Assembly (NCBI GenBank): GCA_950097015.1
Contig: CATNEN010000002.1
Location: 744,001-808,000 of the forward strand
Direction of reading: 5' to 3'
DNA length: 64,000 nucleotides
Source: Macrostomum hystrix
Taxonomy: Eukaryota; Animalia; Platyhelminthes
In this document: piece after piece, positions 6,417-31,040 of the stretch
How the letters are laid out: the number at the start of each line of letters is the position of its first letter
Position numbering within the stretch: the first letter of the stretch is position 1
Notes under the pieces: model-generated
Told to the model about the DNA's origin: nothing
Seen by the model: only the letters and a program-made list of their open reading frames with translations
The model's database searches: none
Position numbers and translations under genes: made by a program

Positions 6417-6422
6417 GGCGTG

Positions 6423-7659: not shown

Positions 7660-9279
7660 TCACTCCATATTCAGCACCACCAGTCGCATGTTCATATTGT
7701 CAGCCACCACCAGCTGCTCGCGCGCGCCTCCCGTCACCACCGCCAGACCAAATGGATGTCTGAATCTGCCGACACCGCTGCCGCTCTCGCCCGGCACCCC
7801 CAGAGTCCACAGCAGCGACCCGTCGTCTGCAGCCACTGCTCGCACTGAGTGACCCCTCCACTCACTCACGAACAGGCGGCCTCTCCTGTCCACGGCCACA
7901 CCCATTAGCCAAGCTAACTCTTTGAGGCCGCAACGCTCAGTCGGGTGCGAGGCGACCACCTGCTGGGTGCCAATGCGCACTCTGTGCACCTGCTTCTGCT
8001 TCCTGTCTGTCACCAGAATGCAGTTGTCGTGAACCGCCATGTTTCTAAGCATAGCAAAAGGAAACTCAGTCAGCGTGATGATCGTCTCCATCTCGCCAGT
8101 CGCTTTGCTGAATGCAACAATTTTGTTGCCACCAGACACAAACACGGAGGCTGCGTTGCTGCCGATTCCACCTATGTCACCGAAGCTAACGATTTGTGGT
8201 TCGATTCGACGCACCTTTCGACCGCTCAGGTCCGTCACTGTCACTGCGTCAGATTGAGCAATGAACAGCAGCTGACGGTCACAGTGAAGACCGCAGGTGT
8301 ACTTCTTTCGGTCGATGTCACAGTGGCACCGCAGATTCTTCGAGCCGTCCACAGACACCACCTGAAGGTGGTCCTTGTCATTACTTGCTGAAAATGATGC
8401 GAAGATGCAGGGCTGAGGCAGAGCCTCACCGCCGTCACTCGCTGACTCGGCGGCCACCACACGGCCTGAGCGGTCACCAACGAATCCGCTGGTGTCGCTG
8501 CACACCGCCAGCCACTGAACGAAGCCATCCAGCTTCACCTCGTGACTGTACACAATCGGATCGAACAATGCCTGTCTCGCCATCGCCATCGCCTTCATTG
8601 CGTCGTCGATCTCCTCGGGTGTCGCGCTGACCTCAGCGTCTCTCCAGCCCTCACCAGTCCACACGTTCACACGAGCCAACGCTCTGCCGAACTGCTCCGA
8701 CACCTGCCCCAGTCGCTCCAGCTGCTGCTCCGCTCCCAAGCTCTCCTCCAGCGACTTCTGCAGCCGATCAAAGTCCGCCTTCAAGTCATCGAGCGACAAC
8801 TCCATCGACATCGTCAGCTCGACAAGCTTCGACATCTCGCCTGCAGCCTCCGCCATCGACGTCTCCTGCCTGTAGCTTCTCACATCGTCCATGTCCCGCT
8901 GCCACACACGCGCTGTCTCAATCCGAGCTATCATCGGACCTGTCAGTCGATCTTCACTCGAATCCAGGTATATCCGCATTGTCTCATACAGCTGCTTCGC
9001 CCGTCGCAGCTGCTCCTCCATCTCGTGAATCCAATCTCCTCCACCACCTGCTGCACTGCCACCTGCAGCTTCGGCTTGTGGAAAGGCACGCAGCTTCTCA
9101 GCGACCTTCTCCTTCAGCTTGAGGGCATCCGCCACATCAACACTCAGGTGTTCCGAGCACAGGTAGCGCTCGGAGAACGGACCCAGGCCGACTGCAGCTT
9201 TTTGGCAGACGACGCAGATTGGGATCACTTCAGGAGGTCCTTCGGAACTCGAGCTGTCGCTGGAGTCTCCACGCTGCAT
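7660..9279 (-). CDS. TRIM-NHL-like protein: Cys/His zinc-binding N-terminus, coiled coil, NHL beta-propeller (539 aa, intronless ORF)
   Basis: CVVC..CSEH motif; helical heptad region; NHL repeats GVAVDRRGRLFVSEWRGHSV, FRHPFGLAV, VVADNMNMRLVV; AATAAA on the minus strand at 7531-7536. Confidence 0.8.
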   Translation of the reverse strand: MQRGDSSDSSSSEGPPEVIPICVVCQKAAVGLGPFSERYLCSEHLSVDVADALKLKEKVAEKLRAFPQAEAAGGSAAGGGGDWIHEMEEQLRRAKQLYETMRIYLDSSEDRLTGPMIARIETARVWQRDMDDVRSYRQETSMAEAAGEMSKLVELTMSMELSLDDLKADFDRLQKSLEESLGAEQQLERLGQVSEQFGRALARVNVWTGEGWRDAEVSATPEEIDDAMKAMAMARQALFDPIVYSHEVKLDGFVQWLAVCSDTSGFVGDRSGRVVAAESASDGGEALPQPCIFASFSASNDKDHLQVVSVDGSKNLRCHCDIDRKKYTCGLHCDRQLLFIAQSDAVTVTDLSGRKVRRIEPQIVSFGDIGGIGSNAASVFVSGGNKIVAFSKATGEMETIITLTEFPFAMLRNMAVHDNCILVTDRKQKQVHRVRIGTQQVVASHPTERCGLKELAWLMGVAVDRRGRLFVSEWRGHSVRAVAADDGSLLWTLGVPGESGSGVGRFRHPFGLAVVTGGAREQLVVADNMNMRLVVLNME

Positions 9280-10074
9280 TTTCAGATTCGAGGTCTAGAA
9301 AGCGAGTCGGAAAGAGGCCGTGAGAGTTGAAGACTGCTGCTGGAATCTGCCAGAACTCTAATATTATCTCAGTGTCAAAAATTCTCAACTTCAACTCGCT
9401 ACCTCAGAAAGCTGTGAAGCAGAAAAGTTGCAGAACTGCCGTAAGCAGGCCGATGCTGAGGCTCAGGTGAGAATGAGTTTCAATCAGACAGCAGTCGGAA
9501 GCTGTGCTCAAGAGTCTGAGATGACTCTCTTGTAAGCTAGGTGTCTCAGTTAAACTCTACTCTGTTGCTAAGCAACAGCAATAAGTTTGAGTCTGGTTGA
9601 CATATCAGAGAACAGAACAGAATGAGAACAGAATGAAATCCTTGGGCTGCTCTGCATCCCCAGCTCAGTGAATCGGCAAGAAACAGGGCGTTTGAAATCA
9701 GTTTTTGTTTATTCTCGGTCGAACGCGAATTCAAAATGCTTTCTGTGACTGCGTGCATTTCTCTGCGGCTGGGACAGAGAGGGCTGGCTCTGCGTAGCTG
9801 TGAGCACAGCTGGGCACCCACCTCTGCCTCCAACTGCTCACAATGGGAGCGTAGATTGGGCGTGTGTACTCAAATGCATTGTTTGTGCACTTAGCTGTGC
9901 CATCTTGAGCCCAAAGTACGACCCGAGACATTGTGGCTCTGCTTGTCAGACACTTTCTGACAGATCCGAGCTATTAGAGAGGCGATCGTCCTGTTAGAGT
10001 AAGGAAAAACAACAGACCAGCAGTTCAAGACGTTGGAAAATCTCATATTTACTTTTTTGTCTGATATTAGCCTC

Positions 10075-10190
10075 ATCAGCTCACATTAGCTTCATGAGCT
10101 CAAATTAGCTTCATCAGCTCACATAATCCTCATCAGCTCACAGTAGCTTCATCAGCTCACATTAGCTTCATGAGCTCACAGTAGCTTCAA
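10075..10190. repeat. ~19-bp tandem repeat (agcttcatcagctcacatt)
   Basis: About 6 degenerate copies. Confidence 0.75.
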
Positions 10191-10384
10191 CGCCACCTGC
10201 AGGCCAGAGAAGGACTTTGGCAGTGCCCTAAGTGCCCTATTCTTAGTCAATAACCTTTTTTATTCGCTTTTATGACTGTTTAACAAAATGTTTGTTGTTA
10301 ACAACAATATTGTTAGTAACAAAATTCTACCCGAGTACACCCGAGTCCACCAGATACACTCAACGTTTTCTTTCTGACCCTTCA

Positions 10385-10905
10385 ATGTTTCTTCCCCAAC
10401 CATGATCTCGTACCCAAATGTACATTCTATGCCTAAATATCTCGTCCACAAATGTACATTCTCCCCCAAAATGTCTCGTCCCTAAAAATATATTCAACCC
10501 CTCAAGATCTCCTCCCCAAATGTACATTCTACCCACAAATATCTCTTCCCCAAATGTACATTCTACCCCAAAAGATCTCTTCCCCAAATGTACGAGCTCG
10601 TACATTGTACCCATGAAGATCTCATCCCCAAAATGCATTCTACCCACAAACATCTCTTCCCCTAATGTACATTCTACCCAGAAATATCTCATCCCCAAAT
10701 GTACATTCTACCCACAAATATCTCTTCCCCAAATGTACATTGTACCCATGAAGATCTCATCCCCAAATATACATTCTACCCACAAATATCTCTTCCCCAA
10801 ATGTGCATTCTACCCCTCAAGATCCCCTCCCCAAATGTACATTCTACCCAGAAATATCTCATCCCCAAATGTACATTCTACCCCCAAAGATCTCTTCCCC
10901 AAGGT
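10385..10905. repeat. ~33-35-bp minisatellite (ccccaaatgtacattctacccacaaatatctctt)
   Basis: About 15 degenerate copies. Confidence 0.85.
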
Positions 10906-11334
10906 GCGGTTTAAGTATAAATCATCATTTTGCAACACTCTAATTTCAACAACAAATGTTGTGAATCTGCATTCTATACATATAAGCATGTTTATTAGGC
11001 CACAGTCACGTACAGCAGACAGCAGCAATTCCATTGATTTCCTCCTCATCAGTGTATTAGTGCACCGGGGGTTACAGGGCAAAGTCGGGAGATTCGGCCG
11101 AACGAGGTCGCCCTTGATTTCCCGACACCGAAGTGATTTATTATCCGACTCCCAACGCAACCACCAAAAATATTCGAGTCCCAATGCGAAGGAGACATGA
11201 GACCATTTCTTTTTCCCTGTGGTCACGTTCCCAACGGGAGTTCTGTTAGGGATAAAATAGAAACACAGAGAGATCAATACAAACACATCCCCAACAGCGC
11301 AATCTGAAGCTTGATTTGGGATTTATTGCCCAAG

Positions 11335-11925
11335 CAATCCTTCAGTGTTCTACTCCCCCCTGATCCTTCAGTCTTCTACTCCCCCTGATCCTTCAGTGTT
11401 CTACTCCCCCTGATCCTTCAGTGTTCTACTCCCCCTGATCCTTCAGTCTTCTACTCCCCCTGATCCTTCAGTGTTCTACGCCCCCCTGATCCTTCAGTGT
11501 TCTACTCCCCCTGATCCTTCAGTGTTCTACTCCCCCTGATCCTTCAGTGTTCTACTCCCCCTGATCCTTCAGTGTTCTACTCCCCCGGATCCTTCAGTGT
11601 TCTACTCCCCCTGATCCTTCAGGGTTCTACTCCCCCTGATCCTTCAGTGTTCTACTCCCCCTGATCCTTCAGTGTTCTACTCCCCCTGATCCTTCAGTGT
11701 TCTACTCCCCCGGATCCTTCAGTGTTCTACGCCCCCCTGATCCTTCAGTGTTCTACTCCCCCTGATCCTTCAGTGTTCTACTCCCCCTGATCCCTGATCC
11801 TTCAGTGTTCTACTCCCCCCGGATCCTTCAGTGTTCTACTCCCCCCGGATCCTTCAGTGTTCTACTCCCCCCTGATCCTTCAGTGTTCTACTCCCCCTGA
11901 TCCATCAATGTTCTACTCCCCCCTG
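11335..11925. repeat. 25-bp minisatellite (tgatccttcagtgttctactccccc)
   Basis: About 22 near-identical copies. Confidence 0.95.
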
Positions 11926-12399
11926 ATGCATGTCACATCGTAGAAATTGTGTGCAATTTAAAGTATGACATGTCATTATTAGTTTGTTTACAAAACGTGA
12001 TAAATTTGTAATAAATCAATCCCACTGGCCAGCTGAGTCCTGCTCAAGATGCTCAAGTGCAAAGACTCGGGCAAGAATCTGTCTTCCCGCGGATCAGCTA
12101 AGAATGTCTCTCGCCGAAACAGCAGCTGCAAAATTTGGGGATAATTACGCTTCTGAAATTTCCTTCCAGCTCTCCGGATTGCCACCTGGAGTAAGACGTA
12201 GCTTCAGAGATTCGTCGAACGTGCCGTCATCGACTTGTTTCAAGCCCTCCTGTCTGATCGTGTTTTTGGTTGACTAGGCATCTGTAATTCAGCTTTTAAG
12301 CCGAACTCGAAAATATATTTTCCCAGTTGATTGAGGCAAAGTAGAACTATGTGAATCTGAATGAGGTCGAAAGTTGGATGGATAATATTTATTTCTTCT

Positions 12400-12715
12400 C
12401 ATTCTCAGAACTTACAAATTGTATTAACATTCTCAGAACTTACAAATTGTATTAACATTCTCAGAACTTACAAATTGTATTAACATTCTCAGAACTTACA
12501 AATTGTATTAACATTCTCAGAACTTACAAATTGTATTAACATTCTCAGAACTTCTTATCCTACCAGACTTGACATTGACTTTTAAAAATACCATCCGACG
12601 AGATGTACATTGATAGTCTAGATTCTCGTCTCCTCAGATGTACATTGATAGTCTAGATTCTCGTCTCCTCAGATGTACATTGATAGTCTAGATTCTCGTC
12701 TCCTCAGATGTACAT
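12400..12715. repeat. Two short tandem arrays: 28-bp (attctcagaacttacaaattgtattaac) x5 and 35-bp (agatgtacattgatagtctagattctcgtctcctc) x3
   Basis: Direct reading. Confidence 0.9.
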
Positions 12716-12743
12716 CGAGAGTTTTAATCTCCTCCCTCTAGAT

Positions 12744-13325
12744 GAGGGGTCGGCACACTTATGAGCAAGCGGGCCAAAGAGAGAAACTAAAATACGACAG
12801 CAGGCCGAATTGACTGTAAAAATATGATATAGGGGAGAGATGAGACACGGGAGAGATGAGACACGGGAGAGATGAGACACGGGAGAGATGAGACACGGGA
12901 GAGATGAGACACTGGAGAGATGAGACACGGGAGAGATGAGACAAGGGGAGAGATGAGACACAGGAGAGATGAGACACGGGAGAGATGAGACACGGGAGAG
13001 ATGAGACAAAAGAGAGATGAGACACGGGAGAGATGAGACACGTGAGAGATGAGACACGGGAGAGATGAGACAAGGGAGAGATGAGACAGGGGAGAGATGA
13101 GACAAAAGAGAGATGAGACACGAGAGAGATGAGACAGGGGAGAGATGAGACAGGGGAGAGATGAGACACGGGAGAGATGAGACAGGGGAGAGATGAGACA
13201 CGGGAGAGATGAGACACGAGAGAGATGAGACACGGGAGAGATGAGACACGGGAGAGATGAGACACGAGAGAGATGAGACACGGGAGAGATGAGACACGGG
13301 AGAGATAAGACACAGGAGAGACAGA
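12744..13325 (+). mobile_element. Truncated hAT MITE (left end only) with internal 16-bp array gagagatgagacacgg
   Basis: gaggggtcggcacact...gggcc...acgacagcaggccgaattgactgta resembles the left end of the element at 13933; no right TIR seen. Confidence 0.65.
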
Positions 13326-13520
13326 GTGTCAGGTGAAGCATCAGGGTGTCAGGGGAGGCATCAGGGTGTCAGGGGAGGCATAAGGGTCTCAGGCAAGGCA
13401 TCAGGGTGTCAGGGGAGGCATCAGGGTCTCAGCGGAGGCATCAGGGTCTCAGCGGAGGCATCAGGGTGTCAGGTGAGGCATCAGGGTGTCAGGGGAGGCA
13501 TCAGGGTGTCAGGTGAGGCA
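13326..13520. repeat. 20-bp minisatellite (gcatcagggtgtcaggggag)
   Basis: About 9 copies. Confidence 0.85.
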
Positions 13521-15180: not shown

Positions 15181-16552
15181 TGCCTCCTCCTTCCTCCTTC
15201 CTCCTTCCTCCATCCTCCTTCCTCCTTCCTTCCTCCTTCCTACTTCCTCCTTCCTCCTCCTTCTTCCTTCCTCCTTCCTCCTCCTTCTTCCTTCCTCCTT
15301 CCTCCTTCCTCCTCCTTCCTCCTTCCTCCTTCCTTCCTCCTTCCTCCTTCCTCCTTCCTCCCTCCTCCTTCCTCCTTCCTCCTTCCTCCTTCCTTCCTCC
15401 TTCCTACTTCCTCCTTCCTCCTCCTTCTTCCTTCCTCCTTCCTCCTCCTTCTTCCTTCCTCCTTCCTCCTCCTTCCTCCTCCTTCCTCCTCCCTCCTCCT
15501 TCCTCCCTCCTTCCTCCCTCCTTCCTCCTCCCTCCTCCTTCCTCCCTCCTTCCTCCCTCCTTCCTCCCTCCTTCCTCCCTCCTTCCTCCCTCCTTCCTCC
15601 CTCCTTCCTCCTCCTTCTTCCTTCCTCCTTCCTCCTTCTTCATCCTCCTTCCTCCTTCTACCTTCCTTCCTCCTTCTTCCTCCCTCCTCCCTCCTTCCTC
15701 CCTCCTTCCTCCTCCCTCCTCCTTCCTCCCTCCTTCCTCCCTCCTTCCTCCCTCCTTCCTCCCTCCTTCCTCCCTCCTTCCTCCCTCCTTCCTCCTCCTT
15801 CTTCCTTCCTCCTTCCTCCTTCTTCATCCTCCTTCCTCCTTCTACCTTCCTTCCTCCTTCTTCCTCCCTCCTTCCTCCTCCTTCCTCCTTCCTCCTTCCT
15901 CCTTCTTCTTCCTTCCTCCTTCCTCCTTCTTCCTCCTCCTTCCTCCTTCCTCCCTCCTCCTTCCTCCTCCTTCCTCCTCCCTCCTCCTTCCTCCCTCCTC
16001 CCTCCTCCTTCCTCCCTCCTTCCTCCCTCCTTCCTCCTCCTTCTTCCTTCCTCCTTCCTCCTTCTTCATCCTCCTTCCTCCTTCTTCCTTCCTTCCTCCT
16101 TCTTCCTTCCTCCTTCCTCCTCCTTCCTCCTTCCTCCTTCCTCCTTCTTCCTTCCTTCCTCCTTCTTCCTTCTTCCTTCCTTCCTCCTTCTTCCTTCCTC
16201 CTTCTTCCTCCTTCCTCCTTCCTCCTTCCTCCTTCCTCCTCCTTCCTCCTCCTTCTTCCTCCTTCCTCCTTCCTCCTTCCTCCTCTTTCCTCCTTCCTCC
16301 TCCTTCTTCCTTCCTCCTTCCTCCTCCTTCCTCCTCCCTCCTCCTTCCTCCTCCCTCCTCTTTCCTCCTCCCTCCTCCTTTCACCTTCCTCCTCCTTCCT
16401 CCTTCCACCCTCCTCCTTCCTCCCTCCTTCTTGCTCCTTCCTCCCTCCTCCTTCCTCCTTCCTCCCTCCTCCTTCCTCCCTCCTCCTTCCTCCTTCCTCC
16501 CTCCTCCTTCCTACTCCCTCCTCCTTCCTCCTTCCTCTTCCTCCTTCCTCCA
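15181..16552. repeat. Polypyrimidine (CCT/CCTT) tract
   Basis: About 1.4 kb of pyrimidines. Confidence 0.95.
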
Positions 16553-16757
16553 TTCGAAAAAACATTCCAAAAAACAAATAACAAATGGCAAAATGTAACA
16601 ATGACACGCTATATTGTCATATTATATCATACCCATGCCTAATTACCAGATACGTCTATTGACATATTCAATCAAATACTACAAATTGTTCCTCTCGTTA
16701 AAACTTCAAACGCATAAACAAAAGAGCCTATTCACCGAAACACTCCTGCAAAGTCTG
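16545..16757. repeat. Orphan third copy of the NHL-gene 3' flank, cut at gcaaagtct
   Basis: ccattcgaaaaaacattccaaaaaac...gagcctattcaccgaaacactcctgcaaagtct matches 7432-7629 and 29225-29418. Confidence 0.85.
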
Positions 16758-16987
16758 CAAAGAGGCGGTGTGTCATGTTATTTTGACAGCCATGGAGTGG
16801 CAAATTTGGAGGGCAGTTAAATAACTGACTGGAGGATGGGGTGGCGGGCAGTTGAATAACTGACTGGAGGATGGGGTGGCGGGCAGGTTGAGGACTATTG
16901 AGCGTGGCAGAGGACTTTTTAACCATAGACTGCAAATTGAGCAGCCACTATTTTATATGAAATTCGATTTGGTTTGGCGCCCATTTT

Positions 16988-19900
16988 ATGCCTCCTCCTT
17001 CCTCCTTCCTCCTCCTTCCTCCTCCTTCCTCTTCCTTCCTCCTCCTACCTCCTCCTTCCTTTTCCTTCCCCCTTCCTCCTTCCTACTTCCTCCCTCCTCC
17101 TTCCTCCTTCCTCCTTCCTCCTTCCTTCCTCCTTCCTACTTCCTCCTTCCTCCCTCCTCCTTCTTCCTTCCTCCTTCCTCCTCCTTCTTCCTTCCTCCTT
17201 CCTCCTTCCTCCTCCTTCCTCCTTCCTCCTTCCTTCCTCCTTCCTCCTTCCTCCTTCCTCCCTCCTCCTTCCTCCTTCCTCCTTCCTCCTTCCTTCCTCC
17301 TTCCTACTTCTTCCTTCCTCCTCCTTCTTCCTTCCTCCTTCCTCCTCCTTCTTCCTTCCTCCTTCCTCCTTCCTCCTTCTTCTTCCTTCCTCCTTCCTCC
17401 TCCTTCCTCCTCCTTCCTCCTCCCTCCTCCTTCCTCCCTCCTTCCTCCCTCCTTCCTCCCTCCTTCCTCCCTCCTTCCTCCTCCTTCTTCCTTCCTCCTT
17501 CCTCCTTCTTCATCCTCCTTCCTCCTTCTTCCTTCCTTTCTCCTTCTTCCTTCCTCCTTCCTCCTCCTTCCTCCTTCCTCCTTCCTCCTTCTTCCTTCCT
17601 TCCTCCTTCTTCCTTCTTCCTTCTTTCCTCCTTCTTCCTTCCTCCTTCTTCCTCCTTCCTCCTTCCTCCTTCCTCCTTCCTCCTTCCTCCTCCTTCCTCC
17701 TCCTTCTTCCTCCTTCCTCCTTCCTCCTCCTTCTTCCTTCCTCCTTCCTCCTCCTTCCTCCCTCCTCCTTCCTCCTCCCTCCTCCTTCTTCCTTCCTCCT
17801 TCCTCCTTCTTCCTCCTCCTTCCTCCTTCTTCCTTCCTCCTCCTTTCTCCTCCTTCTTCCTCCTTCCTCCTTCCTCCTTCCTCCTCTTTCCTCATTCCTC
17901 CTCCTTCTTCCTTCCTCCTTCCTCCTCCTTCCTCCCTCCTCCTTCCTCCTCCCTCCTCCTTCCTCCTCCCTCCTCTTTCCTCCTCCCCCCTCCTTTCTCC
18001 TTCCTCCTCCTTCCTCCTTCCACCCTCCTCCTTCCTCCCTCCTTCTTGCTCCTTCCTCCCTCCTCCTTCCTCCCTCCTCCTCCTTCCTCCTCCTTCCTCC
18101 TTCCTCCTTCCTTCCTCCTTCCTCCTTCCTCCTTCCTCCCTCCTCCTTCCTCCTTCCTCCTTCCTCCTTCCTTCCTCCTTCCTACTTCCTCCTTCCTCCT
18201 CCTTCTTCCTTCCTCCTTCCTCCTCCTTCTTCCTTCCTCCTTCCTCCTTCCTGCTTCTTCCTTCCTTCCTCCGACTTCCTTCCTTCCTCCTTCTTCCTTC
18301 TTCCTTCTTTCCTCCTTCTTCCTTCCTCCTTCTTCCTCCTTCCTCCTTCCTCCTTCCTCCTTCCTCCTTCCTCCTCCTTCCTCCTCCTTCTTCCTCCTTC
18401 CTCCTTCCTCCTTCCTCCTCTTTCCTCCTTCCTCCTCCTTCTTCCTTCCTCCTTCCTCCTCCTTCCTCCCTCCTCCTTCCTCCTCCCTCCTCCTTCTTCC
18501 TTCCTCCTTCCTCCTTCTTCCTCCTCCTTCCTCCTTCTTCCTTCCTCCTCCTTCCTCCTCCTTCTTCCTCCTTCCTCCTTCCTCCTTCCTCCTCTTTCCT
18601 CATTCCTCCTCCTTCTTCCTTCCTCCTTCCTCCTCCTTTCTCCCTCCTCCTTCCTCCTCCGTCCTCCTTCCTCCTCCCTCCTCTTTCCTCCTTCCCCCTC
18701 CTTTCTCCTTCCTCCTCCTTCCTCCTTCCACCCTCCTCCTTCCTCCCTCCTTCTTGCTCCTTCCTCCCTCCTCCTTCCTCCCTCCTCCTCCTTCCTCCTC
18801 CTTCCTTCTTCCTTCCTCCTTCCTCCTCCTTCCTCCCTCCTCCTTCCTCCTCCCTCCTCCTTCCTCCTCCCTCCTCTTTCCTCCTCCCCCCTCCTTTCTC
18901 CTTCCTCCTCCTTCCTCCTTCCACCCTCCTTCTTGCTCCTTCCTCCCTCCTCCTTCCTCCCTCCTCCTCCTTCCTCCTCCTTCCTCCTTCCTCCTTCCTT
19001 CCTCCTTCCTCCTTCCTCCTTCCTCCCTCCTCCTTCCTCCTTCCTCCTTCCTCCTTCCTTCCTCCTTCCTACTTCCTCCTTCCTCCTCCTTCTTCCTTCC
19101 TCCTTCCTCCTCCTTCTTCCTTCCTCCTTCCTCCTTCCTCCTTCCTTCCTCCTTCCTACTTCTTCCTTCCTCCTCCTTCTTCCTTCCTCCTTCCTCCTCC
19201 TTCTTCCTTCCTCCTTCCTCCTTCCTCCTTCTTCTTCCTTCCTCCTTCCTCCTCCTTCCTCCTCCTTCCTCCTCCCTCCTCCTTCCTCCCTCCTTCCTCC
19301 CTCCTTCCTCCCTCCATCCTCCCTCCTTCCTCCTCCTTCTTCCTTCCTCCTTCCTCCTTCTTCATCCTCCTTCCTCCTTCTTCCTTCCTTTCTCCTTCTT
19401 CCTTCCTCCTTCCTCCTCCTTCCTCCTTCCTCCTTCCTCCTTCTTCCTTCCTTCCTCCGACTTCCTTCCTTCCTCCTTCTTCCTTCTTCCTTCTTTCCTC
19501 CTTCTTCCTTCCTCCTTCTTCCTCCTTCCTCCTTCCTCCTTCCTCCTTCCTCCTTCCTCCTCCTTCCTCCTCCTTCTTCCTCCTTCCTCCTTCCTCCTTC
19601 CTCCTCTTTCCTCCTTCCTCCTCCTTCTTCCTTCCTCCTTCCTCCTCCTTCCTCCCTCCTCCTTCCTCCTCCCTCCTCCTTCTTCCTTCCTCCTTCCTCC
19701 TTCTTCCTCCTCCTTCCTCCTTCTTCCTTCCTCCTCCTTCCTCGTCCTTCTTCCTCCTTCCTCCTTCCTCCTTCCTCCTCTTTCCTCATTCCTCCTCCTT
19801 CTTCCTTCCTCCTTCCTCCTCCTTTCTCCCTCCTCCTTCCTCCTCCGTCCTCCTTCCTCCTCCCTCCTCTTTCCTCCTTCCCCCTCCTTTCTCCTTCCTC

Positions 19901-22900
19901 CTCCTTCCTCCTTCCACCCTCCTCCTTCCTCCCTCCTTCTTGCTCCTTCCTCCCTCCTCCTTCCTCCTTCCTCCCTCCTCCTTCCTCCCTCCTCCTTCCT
20001 CCTTCCTCCCTCCTTCCTCCCTCCTTCCTCCTCCTTCTTCCTTCCTCCTTCCTCCTTCTTCATCCTCCTTCCTCCTTCTTCCTTCCTTTCTCCTTCTTCC
20101 TTCCTCCTTCCTCCTCCTTCCTCCTTCCTCCTTCCTCCTTCTTCCTTCCTTCCTCCTTCTTCCTTCTTCCTTCTTTCCTCCTTCTTCCTTCCTCCTTCTT
20201 CCTCCTTCCTCCTTCCTCCTTCCTCCTTCCTCCTTCCTCCTCCTTCCTCCTCCTTCTTCCTCCTTCCTCCTTCCTCCTCCTTCTTCCTTCCTCCTTCCTC
20301 CTCCTTCCTCCCTCCTCCTTCCTCCTCCCTCCTCCTTCTTCCTTCCTCCTTCCTCCTTCTTCCTCCTCCTTCCTCCTTCTTCCTTCCTCCTCCTTCCTCC
20401 TCCTTCTTCCTCCTTCCTCCTTCCTCCTTCCTCCTCTTTCCTCATTCCTCCTCCTTCTTCCTTCCTCCTTCCTCCTCCTTCCTCCCTCCTCCTTCCTCCT
20501 CCCTCCTCCTTCCTCCTCCCTCCTCTTTCCTCCTCCCCCCTCCTTTCTCCTTCCTCCTCCTTCCTCCTTCCACCCTCCTCCTTCCTCCCTCCTTCTTGCT
20601 CCTTCCTCCCTCCTCCTTCCTCCCTCCTCCTCCTTCCTCCTCCTTCCTCCTTCCTCCTTCCTTCCTCCTTCCTCCTTCCTCCTTCCTCCTTCCTCCTTCC
20701 TTCCTCCTTCCTACTTCCTCCTTCCTCCTCCTTCTTCCTTCCTCCTTCCTCCTCCTTCTTCCTTCCTCCTTCCTCCTTCCTCCTCCTTCCTCCTTCCTCC
20801 TTCCTTCCTCCTTCCTCCTTCCTCCTTCCTCCCTCCTCCTTCCTCCTTCCTCCTTCCTCCTTCCTTCCTCCTTCCTACTTCTTCCTTCCTCCTCCTTCTT
20901 CCTTCCTCCTTCCTCCTCCTTCTTCCTTCCTCCTTCCTCCTTCCTCCTTCTTCTTCCTTCCTCCTTCCTCCTCCTTCCTCCTCCTTCCTCCTCCCTCCTC
21001 CTTCCTCCCTCCTTCCTCCCTCCTTCCTCCCTCCATCCTCCCTCCTTCCTCCTCCTTCTTCCTTCCTCCTTCCTCCTTCTTCCTTCCTTTCTCCTTCTTC
21101 CTTCCTCCTTCCTCCTCCTTCCTCCTTCCTCCTTCCTCCTTCTTCCTTCCTTCCTCCGACTTCCTTCCTTCCTCCTTCTTCCTTCTTCCTTCTTTCCTCC
21201 TTCTTCCTTCCTCCTTGTTCCTCCTTCCTCCTTCCTCCTTCCTCCTTCCTCCTTCCTCCTCCTTCCTCCTCCTTCTTCCTCCTTCCTCCTTCCTCCTTCC
21301 TCCTCTTTCCTCCTTCCTCCTCCTTCTTCCTTCCTCCTTCCTCCTCCTTTCTCCCTCCTCCTTCCTCCTCCCTCCTCCTTCTTCCTTCCTCCTTCCTCCT
21401 TCTTCCTCCTCCTTCCTCCTTCTTCCTTCCTCCTCCTTCCTCCTCCTTCTTCCTCCTTCCTCCTTCCTCCTTCCTCCTCTTTCCTCATTCCTCCTCCTTC
21501 TTCCTTCCTCCTTCCTCCTCCTTTCTCCCTCCTCCTTCCTCCTCCGTCCTCCTTCCTCTTCCCTCCTCTTTCCTCCTTCCCCCTCCTTTCTCCTTCCTCC
21601 TCCTTCCTCCTTCCACCCTCCTCCTTCCTCCCTCCTTCTTGCTCCTTCCTCCCTCCTCCTTCCTCCTTCCTCCCTCCTCCTTCCTCCCTCCTCCTTCCTC
21701 CTTCCTCCTTCCTCCTTCCTACTCCCTCCTCCTTCCTCCTTCCTCTTCATCCTTCCTCCCCCTTCTTCCTTCCTCCTTCCTCCTTCCTCCTCCTTCTTCC
21801 TTCCTCCTTCCTCCTCCTTCCTCCCTCCTCCTTCCTCCTCCCTCCTCCTTCCTCCTCCCTCCTCTTTCCTCCTCCCCCCTCCTTTCTCCTTCCTCCTCCT
21901 TCCTCCTTCCACCCTCCTCCTTCCTCCCTCCTTCTTGCTCCTTCCTCCCTCCTCCTTCCTCCCTCCTCCTCCTTCCTCCTCCTTCCTCCTTCCTCCTTCC
22001 TTCCTCCTTCCTCCTTCCTCCTTCCTCCCTCCTCCTTCCTCCTTCCTCCTTCCTCCTTCCTTCCTCCTTCCTACTTCCTCCTTCCTCCTCCTTCTTCCTT
22101 CCTCCTTCCTCCTCCTTCCTCCCTCCTCCTTCCTCCTCCCTCCTCCTTCTTCCTTCCTCCTTCCTCCTTCTTCCTCCTCCTTCCTCCTTCTTCCTTCCTC
22201 CTCCTTCCTCCTCCTTCTTCCTCCTTCCTCCTTCCTCCTTCCTCCTCTTTCCTCATTCCTCCTCCTTCTTCCTTCCTCCTTCCTCCTCCTTCCTCCCTCC
22301 TCCTTCCTCCTCCCTCCTCCTTCCTCCTCCCTCCTCTTTCCTCCTCCCCCCTCCTTTCTCCTTCCTCCTCCTTCCTCCTTCCACCCTCCTCCTTCCTCCC
22401 TCCTTCTTGCTCCTTCCTCCCTCCTCCTTCCTCCCTCCTCCTCCTTCCTCCTCCTTCCTCCTTCCTCCTTCCTTCCTCCTTCCTCCTTCCTCCTTCCTCC
22501 CTCCTCCTTCCTCCTTCCTCCTTCCTCCTTCCTTCCTCCTTCCTACTTCCTCCTTCCTCCTCCTTCTTCCTTCCTCCTTCCTCCTCCTTCTTCCTTCCTC
22601 CTTCCTCCTTCCTCCTCCTTCCTCCTTCCTCCTTCCTTCCTCCTTCCTCCTTCCTCCTTCCTCCCTCCTCCTTCCTCCTTCCTCCTTCCTCCTTCCTTCC
22701 TCCTTCCTACTTCTTCCTTCCTCCTCCTTCTTCCTTCCTCCTTCCTCCTCCTTCTTCCTTCCTCCTTCCTCCTTCCTCCTTCTTCTTCCTTCCTCCTTCC
22801 TCCTCCTTCCTCCTCCTTCCTCCTCCCTCCTCCTTCCTCCCTCCTTCCTCCCTCCTTCCTCCCTCCATCCTCCCTCCTTCCTTCCTTTCTCCTTCTTCCT

Positions 22901-25015
22901 TCCTCCTTCCTCCTCCTTCCTCCTTCCTCCTTCCTCCTTCTTCCTTCCTTCCTCCGACTTCCTTCCTTCCTCCTTCTTCCTTCTTCCTTCTTTCCTCCTT
23001 CTTCCTTCCTCCTTGTTCCTCCTTCCTCCTTCCTCCTTCCTCCTTCCTCCTTCCTCCTCCTTCCTCCTCCTTCTTCCTCCTTCCTCCTTCCTCCTTCCTC
23101 CTCTTTCCTCCTTCCTCCTCCTTCTTCCTTCCTCCTTCCTCCTCCTTTCTCCCTCCTCCTTCCTCCTCCCTCCTCCTTCTTCCTTCCTCCTTCCTCCTTC
23201 TTCCTCCTCCTTCCTCCTTCTTCCTTCCTCCTCCTTCCTCCTCCTTCTTCCTCCTTCCTCCTTCCTCCTTCCTCCTCTTTCCTCATTCCTCCTCCTTCTT
23301 CCTTCCTCCTTCCTCCTCCTTTCTCCCTCCTCCTTCCTCCTCCGTCCTCCTTCCTCCTCCCTCCTCTTTCCTCCTTCCCCCTCCTTTCTCCTTCCTCCTC
23401 CTTCCTCCTTCCACCCTCCTCCTTCCTCCCTCCTTCTTGCTCCTTCCTCCCTCCTCCTTCCTCCTTCCTCCCTCCTCCTTCCTCCCTCCTCCTTCCTCCT
23501 TCCTCCCTCCTCCTTCCTACTCCCTCCTCCTTCCTCCTTCCTCTTCATCCTTCCTCCCCCTTCTTCCTTCCTCCTTCCTCCTTCCTCCTCCTTCTTCCTT
23601 CCTCCTTCCTCCTCCTTCCTCCCTCCTCCTTCCTCCTCCCTCCTCCTTCCTCCTCCCTCCTCTTTCCTCCTCCCCCCTCCTTTCTCCTTCCTCCTCCTTC
23701 CTCCTTCCACCCTCCTCCTTCCTCCCTCCTTCTTGCTCCTTCCTCCCTCCTCCTTCCTCCCTCCTCCTCCTTCCTCCTCCTTCCTCCTTCCTCCTTCCTT
23801 CCTCCTTCCTCCTTCCTCCTTCCTCCCTCCTCCTTCCTCCTTCCTCCTTCCTCCTTCCTTCCTCCTTCCTACTTCCTCCTTCCTCCTCCTTCTTCCTTCC
23901 TCCTTCCTCCTCCTTCTTCCTTCCTCCTTCCTCCTTCCTCCTCCTTCCTCCTTCCTCCTTCCTTCCTCCTTCCTCCTTCCTCCTTCCTCCCTCCTCCTTC
24001 CTCCTTCCTCCTTCCTCCTTCCTTCCTCCTTCCTACTTCTTCCTTCCTCCTCCTTCTTCCTTCCTCCTTCCTCCTCCTTCTTCCTTCATCCTTCCTCCTT
24101 CCTCCTTCTTCTTCCTTCCTCCTTCCTCCTCCTTCCTCCTCCTTCCTCCTCCCTCCTCCTTCCTCCCTCCTTCCTCCCTCCTTCCTCCCTCCATCCTCCC
24201 TCCTTCCTCCTCCTTCTTCCTTCCTCCTTCCTCCTTCTTCATCCTCCTTCCTCCTTCTTCCTTCCTTTCTCCTTCTTCCTTCCTCCTTCCTCCTCCTTCC
24301 TCCTTCCTCCTTCCTCCTTCTTCCTTCCTTCCTCCGACTTCCTTCCTTCCTCCTTCTTCCTTCTTCCTTCTTTCCTCCTTCTTCCTTCCTCCTTGTTCCT
24401 CCTTCCTCCTTCCTCCTTCCTCCTTCCTCCTCCTTCCTCCTCCTTCTTCCTCCTTCCTCCTTCCTCCTTCCTCCTCTTTCCTCCTTCCTCCTCCTTCTTC
24501 CTTCCTCCTTCCTCCTCCTTTCTCCCTCCTCCTTCCTCCTCCCTCCTCCTTCTTCCTTCCTCCTTCCTCCTTCTTCCTCCTCCTTCCTCCTTCTTCCTTC
24601 CTCCTCCTTCCTCCTCCTTCTTCCTCCTTCCTCCTTCCTCCTTCCTCCTCTTTCCTCATTCCTCCTCCTTCTTCCTTCCTCCTTCCTCCTCCTTTCTCCC
24701 TCCTCCTTCCTCCTCCGTCCTCCTTCCTCCTCCCTCCTCTTTCCTCCTTCCCCCTCCTTTCTCCTTCCTCCTCCTTCCTCCTTCCACCCTCCTCCTTCCT
24801 CCCTCCTTCTTGCTCCTTCCTCCCTCCTCCTTCCTCCTTCCTCCCTCCTCCTTCCTCCCTCCTCCTTCCTCCTTCCTCCCTCCTCCTTCCTACTCCCTCC
24901 TCCTTCCTCCTTCCTCTTCATCCTTCCTCCCCCTTCTTCCTTCCTCCTTCCTCCTTCCTCCTTCTTCTTCCTTCCTCCTTCCTCCTTCTTCCTCCTCCTT
25001 CCTCCTTCCTCCCTC
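16988..25015. repeat. ~8-kb polypyrimidine (CCT/CCTT) array with internal higher-order duplications
   Basis: Nearly pure C/T; rare variant words (ttgctcc, ccgact, ctcattcc, ccgtcc) recur in conserved order. Confidence 0.95.
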
Positions 25016-27302
25016 TGATGTGGAGTGTGCTGCGGAATCGAGTGGGGTTGTGGGCCAGCCAAATTTTTCCAATTTTTAGCAAGTCAATAATCGCGACCCA
25101 CATAGCAGCTGGCCGCAGAACACCATCATTAATCTTAGGGCCAGATTTGGGGCGGAGGTGAATTAAGTAGCCGCCGATTCCCCTTGTCTCGGATCTGTCT
25201 AGTCCCCTGTAGAAGTGACTGATCGCGGCCATAGCAATACTGTATGGACTAGTTTAGGTCATAATTCCCCTCCAAACCGCGATCAGATTGTAGGGATCAC
25301 TCATGCGTCTAGAGTGAGCATTAATTCTTCATGTCCCTTTTCTTTACTGTAACCCGAGCCGAAGCTCGATTATGACCTTTCCCCCTTTTAGATACATGTA
25401 ACGACACTATAGGCAGGTCGGCGCCTGCGCTTCCCATATCCCGGCGGGATCACAATCATTGGCCGACTGCCGGCAGACGCTCCTAGTGGGGCATCTGGCG
25501 ATTCTCGCCGCCGCTTCAGTGGGCAATTGGGGTGGCATAATGCCGACCCGATTCCTCGCTGACAGGCTGGCGAGCATGTGGGTTATTTGATGAATGCGAG
25601 GTTGACGGAACTGCAGGACTATTTAAGAAAGCGCGCTGCGCTGCCCCTAGAACCTTCAACCTACCTTTAACCTCCTTTTTTCCCTTGTCCGGTCCCGGAA
25701 CTCGGTCCTTGGACTCTCCCCCTTCTAGGCTAGCACCTAGTCCCTGAGCCTAAGGCTCCAGATCATAGCAGCAGGCAACTACCTGCTAGTGCCCTTAAGC
25801 GTAAGCCACCTCCTCAGGTGCGCTCCAAATTGAGCCTTGAGCTCCCTGCAGTCTGGCCCCTTGCCAACTGTACTCAGCAATCCCTCACCTATTCCCCTGT
25901 TCATTTGCATTCCCCCGCGAGATCGACGGCCTGCAGTGAAGCCAGTCAGCAATCAGATAAGTAACCCGCGCAGCGGACTTTTATTGCTATCCCTAAGGGA
26001 TCTTTACTTAGCTAGTGGGTAATAAGGGCAAGGGCAGGGATTTGTTTTTAGCCTAATAAACTATTCATTATCAATATGCCAAACCTTAATAATTAGGCCA
26101 ATTTAATAACAACTTAATTCCTTTTATCATGCTATTCTTTTCTCTTTATTTTATCGTTAGACAGCCCTCGATCATGAGTGGCTAACTTATTAGGGGGATG
26201 GGCTCTGGTGATGCCTAGCTGAAAGCTGCGGCAGGAGGACAACTGTGAGCGCGCATGAAAGTAATAAGGAGCTAGGGATTTGCGAGTAATATGCGGAGCG
26301 TAGCATGTGTTTCTCTGCTAGGGGTGGGGGAATTCCTTGGCGGGTTTTTCCTCTCTTTCTGGCGGATCAAGGAGTGCGTGTCAACCTCCCTTGTCAATTA
26401 AGTTTCCCTTCTGTTCCCCGCCTCTCGCTGCCGCCGCCATGGGAGCGAGGGGTGTGATCTAATAACCATCGCTTGCATAATCACTCAGCCAGTGTTCTGC
26501 TTAATCTCTCCTGCCTCTGATTTCCTCATCTCACACAGATTCGGATTTGCTAGTTATTTAATGTGTAGGCTGCAATCTAATGTAAGGAATGTGCCTGATG
26601 TTTCATGAGTAGGATTCCGGCTATGGGTTTCTCATTCGAGTTCGGAGTACCACCTTTCTAGACCACTGTAGCGCAGTTTCAGGAATCCCCTGTTGAGGCG
26701 TGTCTCGATTCATTCTGGGGTCTTCACCCTAGTCTAAAACGGAAGTTACAGAATGCCCTATTTTTCGGCTTGTCTGAGATCTGTGCGACAAACTAGGAGC
26801 TGTGAACTCCGGGGACCCAAGTTCCCAAATGTCTGCGGTGGCAACGTAGGCGCATTGGGTGGTGGCGCTACCCTAGATCATTTTCCGCTTTGCCAATAGC
26901 CTTTCCGCATTTCTAAGACAAGAGCCTGGGCCGAATCGACCACTGCTACCGCTGTTAGGAGTCAGTTATGAACATGCTACTGATGACAGTAGGCTATCTA
27001 GCTCTGTCCTACCTGCTTGCGGGTAGTCCGATATCTCTTTAGACTTTAGCCGGTTTCGAGCACTGCTTGGGGTAGGCACGGCAGTCACGCCTGTGGCCTA
27101 TGGGTTGAGTTGGACTGGCCAGCCTGAGGCCGAGAGGACCGCTCCCTGCATCCACTGTCTCTCCCTTCATCTCTCCCTTCATCCCTCTCCCCGCGATAAA
27201 TCGCGAGGCTTTGCGGTACGACTTCTAACTCTATCGCCATTCCCACACTCCCTTTCTCTCTTGAGGACAGGTCATCGGATTGCAAAACCCGCACCCACTT
27301 CA
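25016..27302. mobile_element. Possible solo LTR or non-autonomous element
   Basis: Mixed-composition 2.3-kb block with no long ORF, bounded by TGATGTGG...CCACTTCA (TG..CA, 7/8 inverted match); TATTTAA at 25620 and AATAAA at 26055; no TSD found. Confidence 0.3.
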
Positions 27303-27475
27303 CCAATCGCTATGAACACGGGCTCCATCCGATGAAACAACTTCCAGAATCACAAAACATCGGCATCGTCGATATATTCAACGATTCTCGTCGGGGTGTC
27401 TCGTGGCAAAGACCGCCAATATAGGCATAAATTTTCTGCTCACAAAATTTTATCATGTAACCATGCCGGCTTAAA

Positions 27476-27595
27476 GGGGGGTCCGTGGCAGAGCGATTAT
27501 CGCGTTTGCCTCTCGCACCAAGGTCCCTAAGTTCGATTCCACGGCGAGGCCACATTTATTAGGGGCGCAGCCGCGGGGAGAAGGCTTGGGGGCTC
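27476..27595 (+). mobile_element. tRNA-derived SINE 5' part (paralog of 6297-6416)
   Basis: A and B boxes; near identity to the copy A SINE. Confidence 0.8.
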
Positions 27596-27600
27596 GTCGT

Positions 27601-29222
27601 GCTGCCTCCTCCTTCCTCCTTCCTCCTCCTTCCTTCTCCTCCCTCCTTCCTCCTTCCTTCCTCCTCCTTCCTCCTCCTTTCTCCTCCTTCCACCTTCCTC
27701 CCTCCTCCTGCCTCCTCCTTCCTCTTTCCTTCCTTCTCTACCCTCCTTCCTCCTTCCTCCTGCCTCCCCCTTCCTTCCTTCTCCTTCCTCCTTCCTCCTG
27801 CCTCCTTCCTCCTTCCTCCTTCCTCCTTCCTCCTTCTTCCTTCCTCCTTCCTCCTTCCTCCGTCCTCCTCCTTCCTTCCTTCCTCCTTCCTCCTTCCTTC
27901 CTTCTCCTTCCTCCTCCTTCCTCCTCCATCCTCCTTCCTCTTCCTTCCTCCTTCCTTCCTTCCTCCTCCTTCCTCCTTCCTCCTTCTTCCTTCATCCTTC
28001 CTCCTTCCTTCCTTCTCCTTCCTCCTTCCTTCCTTCCTCCTACCTCCTTCCTTCCTTCCTCCTACCTCCTTCCTTCCTTCCTCCTTCCTCCGTTCTCCTT
28101 CCTCCTTCTTGCTTCCTCCTTCCTCCTCCTTCCTCCTTCCTTCCTCCTTCCTCCTTCCTCCGTTCTCCTTCCTCCTTCTTCCTTCCTCCTTCCTCCTTCC
28201 TTCTTCCTTCCTTCCTTCCTTCTCCTTCCTCCTCCTTCCTCCTCCTCCCTCTTTCCTCCTTTCTCCTTCCTTCCTTCTCCTTCCTCCTCCTTCCTTCCTC
28301 CTTACTCCTTCCTCCTACCTCCTTCCTTCCTTCCACCTTCCTCTTCGTTCCTCCTTCCTTCCTCCTTCCTCCTCCTTCGTCCTTCCTCCGTTCTCCTTCC
28401 TCCTTCTTCCTTCATCCTTCCTCCTTCCTTCCTTCTCCTTCCTCCCTCCTTCCTTCCTCCTACCTCCTTCCTTCCTTCCTCCTTCCTCCGTTCTCCTTCC
28501 TCCTTCATCCTTCCTCCTTCCTTCTCCTTCCTTCCTTCCTCCTTCCTCCGTTCTCCTTCCTCCTCCTACCTCCTTCCTTCCTTCCTCCTTCCTCTTCCTT
28601 TCTCCTTCCTCCTCCTTCCTCCTCCTCCCTCCTTCCTCCTTTCTCCTTCCTTCCTTCTCCTTCCTCCTCCTTCCTTCCTCCTTACTCCTTCCTCCTACCT
28701 CCTTCCTTCCTTCCTCCTTCCTCTTCGTTCCTCCTTCCTTCCTCCTTCCTCCTCCTTCCTCCTTCCTCCGTTCTCCTTCCTCCTTCTTCCTTCATCCTTC
28801 CTCCTTCCTTCCTTCTCCTTCCTCCCTCCTTCCTTCCTCCTACCTCCTTCCTTCCTTCCTCCTTCCTCTTCCTTTCTCCTTCCTTCCTTCTTCCTCCTTC
28901 TTCCTTCTTCCTTCCTCCTCCTTCCTCCTCCTTCCTCCTTCCTCCTTCGTCCTTCCGCCTTCCTCCTCCTTCCGCCTCCTTCCTCCTCCTTCCTCCTTCC
29001 TCCTTTCTCCTTCTTCCTCCTTCCTTCTTTCTCCTTCTTCCTCCTTTCTTCCTTCTCCTCCCTCCTTCCTCTTTCCTCCTCCTTCCTTCTTCCTTCTCCT
29101 CCCTCCTCCTCCTTCCTCCATCCTCCTTCCTCCTTCCTTCCTTCTCCTCCCTCCTCCTCCTTCCTCCTTCCTTCCTTCTCCTTCCTCCTTCCTCCTTTCA
29201 CTTTTACTCCTTCTTCCTCTAT
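27601..29222. repeat. Polypyrimidine (CCT/CCTT) tract
   Basis: About 1.6 kb, at the position homologous to 6423-7432. Confidence 0.95.
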
Positions 29223-29448
29223 CCTCCAAAAACATTCCAAAAAACAAAAACAAAATGCAACAATGATACCCTATATTGTCTTTTTTTATCATTTCTATGC
29301 CTACTTACCAGATACATCTATTGACATATTCAATAAAATACAACAAATTTTTCCTCTCGTTAAAATTTCAAACGCGCAAACAAAAGAGCCTATTCGCCGA
29401 AACACTCCTGCAAAGTCTCTGCTTCATCTACGCTCACTCACTGACGAC

Positions 29449-31040
29449 TCACTCCATATTCAGCACCACCAGTCGACTGTTCACATAGTCAGCCACCACC
29501 AGCTGCTCGCGCGCGCCTCCCGTCACCACCGCCAGACCAAATGGACAACTGAATCTGCCGACACCGCTGCCGCTGTCGCCCGGCACCCCCAGAGTCCACA
29601 GCAGCGACCCGTCGTCTGCAGTCACCGCTCGCACTGAGTGACCTTGCCATTCACTCACGAACAGGCGGCCTCTCCTATCCACGGCCACACCCACTGGCTC
29701 AGTAAACTTTTTGAGGCCGCAACGCTCAGTGGGAGGCGACCACCTGCTGGGTGTCAATGCGCACTCTGTGCACCTGATTCTGCTTCCAGTCTGTCACCAG
29801 AATGCAGTTGTCGTGAACCGCTAGGTTGCCCAGTCCAGCATCAGGAAGCTCAGTCAACGTCTCCATCTCGCCAGTCGCTTTGCTGAATGCAACAATTTTG
29901 TTGCCACCAGACACAAACACCGAGGCTGCGTTGCCGCCGATTGCTCTTATTTCACCGAAGCCAACGATTTGTGGTTCGATTCGACGCACCTTTCTACCGC
30001 TCAGGTCCGTCACTGTCACTGCGTCAGATTGAGCAATGAACAGCAGCTGACGGTCACAGAGAAGGCCGCAGATGTACTTCTTTCGGTCGATGTCGCAGTG
30101 GCACCGCAGATTCTTCGAGCCGTCCACAGACACCACCTGAAGGTGATTCTTACCATCGAATGATGCGAAGATGCAGGGCTCAGGCAGAGCCTCACCGCCG
30201 TCACTCGCTGACTCGGCGGCCACCACACGGCCTGAGCGGTCAACAACGAATCCGCTGGTGTCGCTGCACACCGCCAGCCACAGAACGTAGTCATCCAGCT
30301 TCACCTCGTGACTGAACACAATCGAGCAATGCCTGTCTCGCCATCGCCATCGCCTTCATTGCGTCTTCGATCTCTTCGGGTGTCGCGCTGACCTCAGCGT
30401 CTCTCCAGCCCTCACCAGTCCACACGTTCACACGAGCCAACGCTCTGCCGAACTGCTCCGACACCTGCCCCAGTAGCTCCAGCTGCTGCTCCGCTCCCAA
30501 GCTCTCCTCCAGCGACTTCTGCAGCCGATCAAAGTCCGCCTTCAAGTCATCGAGCGACAACTCCATCGACATCGTCAGCTCGACAAGCTTCGACATCTCG
30601 CCTGCAGCCTCCGCCATCGACGTCTCCTGCCTGTAGCTTCTCACATCGTCCATGTCCCGCTGCCACACACGCGCTGTCTCAATCCGAGCTATCATCGGAC
30701 CTGTCAGTCGATCTTCACTCGAATCCAGGTATCTCCGCATTGTCTCATACAGCTGCTTCGCCCGTCGCAGCTGCTCCTCCATCTCGTGAATCCAATCTCC
30801 TCCACCACCTGCTGCACTGCCGCCTGCAGCTTCGGCTTGTGGGAAGGCACGCAGCTTCTCAGCGACCTTCTCCTTCAGCTTGTGGGCATCCGCCACATCA
30901 ACACTCAGGTGTTCCGAGCACAGGTAGCGCTCGGAGAACGGACCCAGGCCGACTGCAGCTTTTTGGCAGACGACGCAGATTGGGATGGCTTCAGGAGGTC
31001 CTTCGGAACTCGAGCTGTCGCTGGAGTCTCCACGCTGCAT
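29449..31040 (-). pseudogene. Frameshifted paralog of the TRIM-NHL-like gene
   Basis: Split into ORFs 30291-31040, 29726-30319 and 29449-29757 by two 5-nt deletions relative to copy A (near 30325 and 29732); poly(A) signal reads AATAGA instead of AATAAA. Confidence 0.8.

Follow-up and report, generated by a model that had tools for sequence, protein, structure and literature searches.

A Macrostomum multigene family related to TRIM-NHL proteins varies at residues on one predicted face of its propeller

We describe a gene family represented by two copies in a 64,000-nucleotide stretch of the Macrostomum hystrix genome (contig CATNEN010000002.1, positions 744,001 to 808,000; C2:744001-808000 in our contig numbering), which we refer to as the window. 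Copy A (7660-9279, reverse strand) is an intact, intronless gene for 539 amino acids, lying in a single open reading frame (ORF) with its stop codon inside the span, and was recovered at 100% identity in the genome search. Copy B (29449-31040, reverse strand) is a frameshifted relative. The two belong to a large multigene family of the Macrostomum lineage, derived from the TRIM-NHL type, in which a small set of propeller codons changes from copy to copy while the remainder of the protein is held nearly constant. We consider it likely that the whole is to be explained by a framework maintained through gene conversion, diversifying selection on about 23 residues of the top face of the propeller, and birth and death of the genes, which together would yield a repertoire of binding proteins.

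Results

The signal of selection is concentrated on a few propeller codons

Reading copy B in the frame of copy A, we found five residue changes over codons 1-240 (V18A, L53H, I103R, R189L and D225E) and 38 over codons 241-539, the latter segment also carrying two three-codon deletions. Purely synonymous codons number 3 and 10 in the two segments, and 11 of the 48 differing propeller codons have two or more nucleotide changes. The initial annotation, made from the sequence of the window alone, had put the residue differences at about 5 and about 35, in good agreement with this count, and every pair of loop motifs it quoted (for example ELAWLMG/KFTEPVG and DNMNMR/DYVNSR) is present in the two copies.

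In the genome (220 Mb in 42 contigs), no fewer than 15 paralogs at 76-91% identity are intact, full-length and intronless. We aligned 14 of them by codon (L001-L014); L015 (76% identity), L019 (57%), every broken copy and the more distant paralogs were set aside. Likelihoods under site models were obtained with a purpose-written implementation of the GY94 codon model with relative branch lengths fixed, which under M0 returned a log-likelihood of -4415.80 (IQ-TREE: -4415.78). The M0 ratio of nonsynonymous to synonymous rates (omega) is 0.355 for the N-terminal part and 1.00 for the propeller; the domain-wise comparison that the initial annotation had proposed thus gives a propeller value not well below 1. 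In the propeller, M2a is strongly preferred over M1a (likelihood ratio test statistic (LRT) 414.7, p 9e-91); it assigns 9% of sites to a class of omega 11.9 and 45% to omega 1. Twenty-three propeller sites have a posterior above 0.95 under M2a: in copy A numbering 253, 255, 298, 299, 301, 327, 329, 343, 368, 370, 410, 412, 456, 457, 459, 474, 475, 507, 508, 510, 528, 529 and 531. The N-terminal part gave no signal of positive selection (LRT 4.0, not significant). Because the family is reticulate, the propeller was retested in four quarters, each with its own tree, and the quarters gave LRTs of 97.5, 64.0, 60.2 and 148.7.

Pooled pairwise comparisons of the same 14 paralogs show where the changes fall. 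Synonymous (pS) and nonsynonymous (pN) divergence are 0.052 and 0.023 in the N-terminal part and 0.108 and 0.091 in the propeller. The 24 propeller codons with 5-10 residue types reach a pS of 0.350 and a pN of 0.54, and propeller codons with invariant residues have a pS of 0.088 at a pN of 0.

The changes between copies A and B follow this family-wide distribution: they differ at 16 of the 21 comparable selected sites as against 22 of the 267 other propeller sites (Fisher p 4e-12), which bears out the earlier impression that the quoted changes cluster at loop sites. The same positions vary in a second species: in seven paralogs of Macrostomum lignano the 23 sites hold on average 4.22 residue types, compared with 1.65 elsewhere in the propeller (p 1e-12).

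The selected residues lie on the predicted top face

To place these residues on the propeller, we gave consecutive numbers to its 26 predicted strands and to the intervening loops, on the basis of the DSSP string alone of the AlphaFold2 (AF2) model of copy A. Nineteen of the 24 hypervariable codons are in odd-numbered loops and five are two residues into the strand that follows; none is in or beside an even-numbered loop (Fisher p 3e-5), so that on the predicted structure the variable sites are confined to one side, as the initial annotation had anticipated. The even loops, which belong to the bottom face, are conserved, with a nonsynonymous diversity (piN) of 0.028, and exposure alone is therefore not what makes a loop variable.

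The b-c and d-a loops define the top surface of NHL propellers, which is the RNA-binding face of Brat (PMC4015489), and the top is the ligand face in both Brat and LIN-41 (PMC4015489, PMC5908797). In an alignment of the family profile to TRIM71, residues 456, 457 and 459 occupy the x positions of the FxxPxG motif at the entry of strand a, and the pairs 474/475 and 528/529 follow the D of DxxNxR in the b-c turn. The 23 selected residues lie on the side of the d-a and b-c loops, which strand parity and register identify as the predicted top face.

Trp (7-fold), Tyr (16-fold), Met (4-fold) and Phe (2-fold) are over-represented at the selected sites relative to the remaining propeller positions. 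The summed net charge of the selected sites ranges from -3 to +5 across the 14 paralogs, with most between -1 and +1. Such aromatic-rich, near-neutral sites suit RNA no better than they suit protein or peptide ligands.

Paralogs share variants in differing combinations

Silent diversity among the paralogs rises from 0.015 at the 5' end of the gene to about 0.1 near the 3' end. The four-gamete test is failed by 36% of informative site pairs, the minimum number of recombination events (Rmin) is 40, and the pairwise homoplasy index (PHI) gives p 0.015-0.036. Sixty-two nucleotide differences separate copies A and B in the propeller, and both states of 40 of them recur among the other paralogs. Of the remainder, 12 are private changes of B and 10 of A, as compared with a single private change each in the N-terminal part. 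The propeller of copy B is closest to L004 and L010 in one segment and to L002, L003 and L005 in another, and not to copy A.

The coding sequence is far less diverged than its surroundings. Between the two copies the flanks differ by 13.1% over 603 nt on the 5' side and 15.7% over 216 nt on the 3' side, with 17-21% in the distal parts and only 3-6% next to the gene (the proximal 230 nt upstream and 70 nt downstream). The N-terminal coding part differs by 1.4%, and silent divergence is about 2% in this part and 6-9% in the propeller, well short of the distal flanks. These patterns indicate that gene conversion, too, acts on the family. The contrast between copies A and B is a sample of the family-wide pattern rather than the record of divergence since a duplication of their own.

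Copy B is broken

Copy B aligns with copy A over its full length (96% identical columns, aligned flanks counted), and the genome search returns it as three matches with a stop. Its ORF is split into three pieces in three frames (30291-31040, 29726-30319 and 29449-29757) because two 5-bp deletions, both private to B, shift the frame: the first at 30325/30324 (copy A codons 239-241) and the second at 29734/29733 (codons 444-445). The first piece reaches a stop 13 codons past the first frameshift. Two further deletions of 9 bp are in frame, one at 30159/30158 (codons 296-299) within a hypervariable loop and common to paralogs L010 and L015, the other at 29861/29860 (codons 399-401) and private to B. 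The initial annotation had noticed the two in-frame deletions and missed the two frameshifting ones. Given its state in three frames, copy B is not an intact paralog, and from the assembly sequence it appears to be a dead or truncated copy inactivated by two frameshifts. An AATAAA stands 123 nt past the stop of copy A (7537-7542); the aligned place in copy B (29320-29330) reads AATAGA.

The proposal of a conserved scaffold with a hypervariable face therefore stands at the level of the family, where 23 sites on one side have an omega of about 12, but is not supported as it was worded for the A/B pair on which it was built, since B is frameshifted and most of the differences are shared variants.

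The proteins resemble TRIM-NHL proteins without a RING

The AF2 model of copy A has a predicted local distance difference test (pLDDT) score of 79 overall and about 90 in the propeller. It shows a small finger (residues 21-41), helices at 42-64, 82-146 and 149-206, a disordered linker and a propeller at 243-539. The finger has the pattern C-x2-C-x15-C-x2-H (residues 22-44, 9148-9216, reverse strand) with one zinc site, and its ligands C22, C25, C41 and H44 are invariant in 27 family members; the spacing presumably corresponds to ligands 1, 2, 4 and 5 of the B-box2 consensus. Neither copy A nor any of the 27 members matches the Pfam zf-B_box profile, and none of the 27 matches a Pfam RING. No more than 21 residues stand ahead of the single finger, and in copy A the frame stays open for just five codons upstream of the start codon. 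The long helices (residues 42-206, 8662-9156, reverse strand) are predicted to form a coiled coil, probably for dimerisation.

The propeller (residues 243-539, 7663-8553, reverse strand), which bears all the selected sites, was recognised by Foldseek and by a family profile. Pfam NHL (PF01436) is matched in 25 of the 27 members with a best E of 3e-10, copy A alone scoring 19.3 bits, just below the 20-bit cut-off. The best Foldseek matches of the model are the six-bladed NHL domains of Thin, TRIM71/LIN-41, TRIM2 and TRIM3 (template-modelling score 0.74-0.79, root-mean-square deviation 3.2-3.8 Å), and the family profile matches the NHL domains of TRIM71 (E 8e-27), Thin (2e-23), TRIM2/3 (2e-18) and Brat (2.5e-8). 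The architecture is thus TRIM-NHL-like but lacks a RING: a B-box-like finger with one zinc site leads into a long coiled coil, which is followed by an NHL propeller. The label TRIM given in the initial annotation applies only in a loose sense, as a RING is missing and the B-box has shrunk to a single zinc site.

The family is large, and many copies are partial

Beyond the close paralogs, which like the broken copies form clusters on contigs C2 and C11, others were found at 45-57% identity and dozens at 27-37%. The only outside relatives detected are hypothetical proteins of M. lignano (44-57% identity), labelled "B box-type domain-containing" in UniProt. About ten further copies are broken or partial, which together with copy B bears out the earlier suggestion of birth and death.

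Two partial copies that hold only the propeller (copy A nt 780-1620) stand in tandem just before the window, downstream of L010 (C2:732.5-734.8 kb; L029:29-851 and L029:1498-2336). Most of their first 540 nt is identical between the two. Further 3', each has a perfect 90-nt match to an intact paralog, one to L010 and the other to L008 on a different contig, which suggests that fragments and intact genes exchange sequence.

Sequence fragments sharing 44-45% identity with the N-terminal region (finger and coiled coil) were seen on the opposite strand near several members (C2:17324-17686, 43972-44370, 947727-948038 and 954557-954868, all on the plus strand) and may represent a related, divergently oriented neighbour gene; the genome search reported no such fragment beside copy A or B.

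Genomic setting of the two copies

Each gene lies in a duplicated block, at 6118-9881 for copy A, where it takes in some 600 bp upstream, the gene itself and the polypyrimidine array that follows, and at 27299-31626 for copy B. In a blastn comparison of the window with itself, 28142-31626 matches 6428-9881 at 88.8%, giving a block of about 3.5 kb. Tandem Repeats Finder places a (TCCTCCT)n-like array 3' of copy A at 6426-7426 and the same array 3' of copy B at 27607-29197, 200-400 bp from each gene; on the gene strand these arrays are polypurine. A 9.8-kb, almost pure polypyrimidine array of the (TCCTCCT)n type occupies 15185-25012, with GC skew and AT skew near -1. Across the genome, a polypurine tract on the gene strand follows paralogs L001-L010 and is absent after L011-L015 and the more distant members, and the tract is therefore part of the duplication unit of that subfamily. 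Polypurine/polypyrimidine tracts are capable of triplex formation and might favour breakage or exchange. Searching the entire window for direct repeats yielded the polypyrimidine satellite alone and was uninformative on the genes.

Two more tandem arrays lie between the gene copies, at 11337-11927 (25-nt unit, 23 copies) and 12833-13321 (16-nt unit, 30 copies). The window was also searched for mobile elements that might carry the family, and no mobile-element genes were found beside either copy. Far from both copies, a 221-aa ORF (40595-41260, forward strand) has homeodomain-like helix-turn-helix domains as found at transposase N termini, at an E of 1e-5 that is below the Pfam cut-off. Another ORF (38333-39388, forward strand) encodes a JHBP/takeout domain (E 2e-16) and a group 7 allergen domain (E 1e-30).

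Discussion

The explanation that we regard as likely, gene conversion and selection acting on the same genes, can be put as follows. Frequent conversion in short tracts would keep the coding framework alike among copies, most of all at the 5' end, and purifying selection would help to hold it, while diversifying selection would keep the roughly 23 residues of the d-a and b-c loops on the top face different from copy to copy. New copies would arise by tandem and dispersed duplication, and many would die. On this view ligands would bind to the top face, and the genes would form a germline-encoded set of cytosolic binders whose targets are diverse or change fast. The absence of a RING speaks against a ligase activity of their own; the proteins would act as binders or adaptors and not as ubiquitin ligases themselves.

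Several points weigh against this explanation. Site-model tests are inflated by recombination and by multi-nucleotide changes, and our code holds relative branch lengths fixed. Taken as a class, the top-face loops have a piN/piS of only 1.05 (95% interval 0.75-1.5), with a synonymous diversity (piS) of 0.188 compared with 0.07-0.08 elsewhere. Because invariant and selected codons are pooled in this class and its silent diversity is raised, we put weight instead on the site models and on the comparison with framework and flanks. Invariant codons within two codons of a hypervariable one have twice the silent diversity of others (piS 0.148 vs 0.078). A local mutational or templated process could contribute to this rise, which also fits long-kept divergent loop variants linked to the selected sites.

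The assignment to the top face comes from a predicted structure, by strand parity and register and not by coordinates, and DSSP counts 26 strands in the model, two more than the 24 of a six-bladed propeller. The last blade of LIN-41 is closed by its first strand (PMC5908797), and the model suggests the same for this family.

A run-length test of the GENECONV type gave no significant evidence of long tracts in which A or B took part (global p >= 0.19). Any exchanges are therefore short, and the case for conversion is built on the four-gamete failures, the PHI test, the shared variants and the contrast between flank and coding sequence. As to copy B, its frameshifts are known from the assembly alone. 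Thirteen public read runs contain less than half of the sampled words, and the contigs we built from four of them are short and too fragmented to separate paralogs. These contigs reach two of the three private deletion sites (29861/29860 and 29734/29733), where they carry undeleted, paralog-type sequence collapsed across paralogs, and so neither confirm nor refute the deletions or the expression of copy B.

The selection may be real and yet be driven by something other than pathogens, such as reproductive conflict over the sperm or seminal proteins of these hermaphrodites, allorecognition, or the control of the animal's own mobile elements or RNAs. We hold such a driver to be possible, if on the doubtful side. 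Nothing in our data is specific to pathogens, and canonical TRIM-NHL proteins are RNA regulators of germline and stem cells (PMC4015489, PMC5908797); a study of Macrostomum reports rapid turnover of reproduction-related genes (PMC10092323). However, inspection of the N terminus by eye reveals no signal peptide, which makes a secreted seminal role unlikely, and the selected surface is not consistently basic, unlike that of RNA-binding NHL domains.

A more specific extension of the preferred explanation would see the genes as an antibody-like germline repertoire of cytosolic NHL-propeller receptors in Macrostomum, with loops re-assorted by short-tract conversion and with dead copies and fragments as a reservoir of loops. 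These receptors would recognise viruses, mobile elements or other non-self, as an animal counterpart of the fungal HNWD proteins and an innate-immune scaffold hitherto undescribed. We offer this only as a speculation that is rather unlikely to prove correct in full.

It is improbable that the variable patches are the work of a site-directed mutational process, be it local hypermutation or templated patch replacement from partial or dead copies, without selection. The multi-nucleotide codon changes noted above, the silent diversity raised at and beside variable codons, the loop variants that paralogs have in common in differing combinations, and the propeller-only copies that exchange sequence with intact genes would all be expected of such a process. 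It would, however, have to target i/i+2 pairs at the entry of strand a and the b-c turns of every blade while sparing the codons between, and framework codons in the very same loops are invariant at the protein level. The raised silent diversity beside selected sites is equally expected from divergent variants that are kept for long, and no long tracts were detected.

Conversion alone, which the initial annotation had raised as an alternative, would homogenise the N-terminal half and leave the propeller to show the true age of the duplicates, with no selection for diversity. Much of our data agrees with the conversion part of this proposal: the climb in silent diversity from 5' to 3', the pS at invariant codons (0.046 in the N-terminal part vs 0.088 in the propeller), flanks diverged by 13-16% beside N-terminal coding sequence diverged by 1.4%, and the abundance of four-gamete failures. 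Yet the silent asymmetry between the two halves is only about 1.9-fold, whereas the nonsynonymous one is 4-fold overall and more than 20-fold at the selected sites, and the pN of hypervariable codons exceeds even the divergence of the distal flanks. Conversion alone also does not account for the restriction of variable sites to one face when the equally exposed bottom loops are conserved, for the variability of the same sites in M. lignano, or for the omega well above 1 indicated by the per-segment tests. Conversion and selection are thus not exclusive, and conversion as the sole cause is highly unlikely.

Relaxed constraint, with unconstrained loops and the asymmetry between A and B produced by pseudogene decay, is hardly credible: B is indeed frameshifted and M2a does place 45% of propeller sites at omega 1, but just 12 of the 62 propeller differences are private to B while intact A has 10 of its own, the selected class has an omega of about 12, far over neutrality, the pattern is present among 14 intact genes, and the bottom loops are conserved.

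The preferred explanation can be set beside known systems. As in the TRIM-NHL proteins TRIM71/LIN-41, TRIM2, TRIM3, Thin/TRIM32 and Brat, a zinc finger is followed by a coiled coil and a C-terminal NHL propeller; these proteins give the best fold and profile matches, and the FxxPxG and DxxNxR motifs are in register. The family departs from them in the lack of a RING, a feature also missing from Brat, and in a four-ligand finger in place of full B-boxes. Its genes are intronless and number in the dozens, compared with three to five canonical genes per animal (PMC4015489), and its top face is hypervariable, aromatic-rich and near neutral where the canonical one is conserved and basic.

The closest mechanistic analogue is the HNWD family (het-d/het-e) of the fungus Podospora anserina, whose WD40 repeats evolve in concert while positive diversifying selection acts on residue pairs of the top platform, at the d-a loop and the b-c turn (PMC1805685). 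The propeller described here varies at the same loop positions under what would be the same two forces. It is an NHL and not a WD40 propeller, however; sequence exchange in the fungus takes place among repeats, both of one gene and of different genes, and HNWD proteins have an NLR architecture with a death-effector domain and come from a fungus, not an animal.

The antiviral TRIMs, namely primate TRIM5alpha and the finTRIMs of fish, likewise combine a coiled-coil scaffold with lineage-specific tandem expansion, and positive selection in surface loops of their C-terminal B30.2/SPRY recognition domain is described for them (PMC3845644, PMC3137616). They differ from the present family in having SPRY rather than NHL, in possessing a RING and in a demonstrated antiviral function. 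Known repertoires of diversifying recognition proteins are built on LRR, Ig, SPRY and WD40 scaffolds, whereas NHL domains are otherwise known as conserved binders of RNA or protein present in few copies per genome. Our literature search found no diversifying recognition repertoire on an NHL propeller, none in flatworms, and no paper joining Macrostomum and NHL.

The family offers a clean case of concerted evolution and diversifying selection acting on the same genes. If it is a recognition system, it would give a handle on innate immunity or genome defence in a clade of regenerating model flatworms, and would be a natural example of one propeller face being re-tuned while its framework is held constant, which would be of interest for the engineering of binders.

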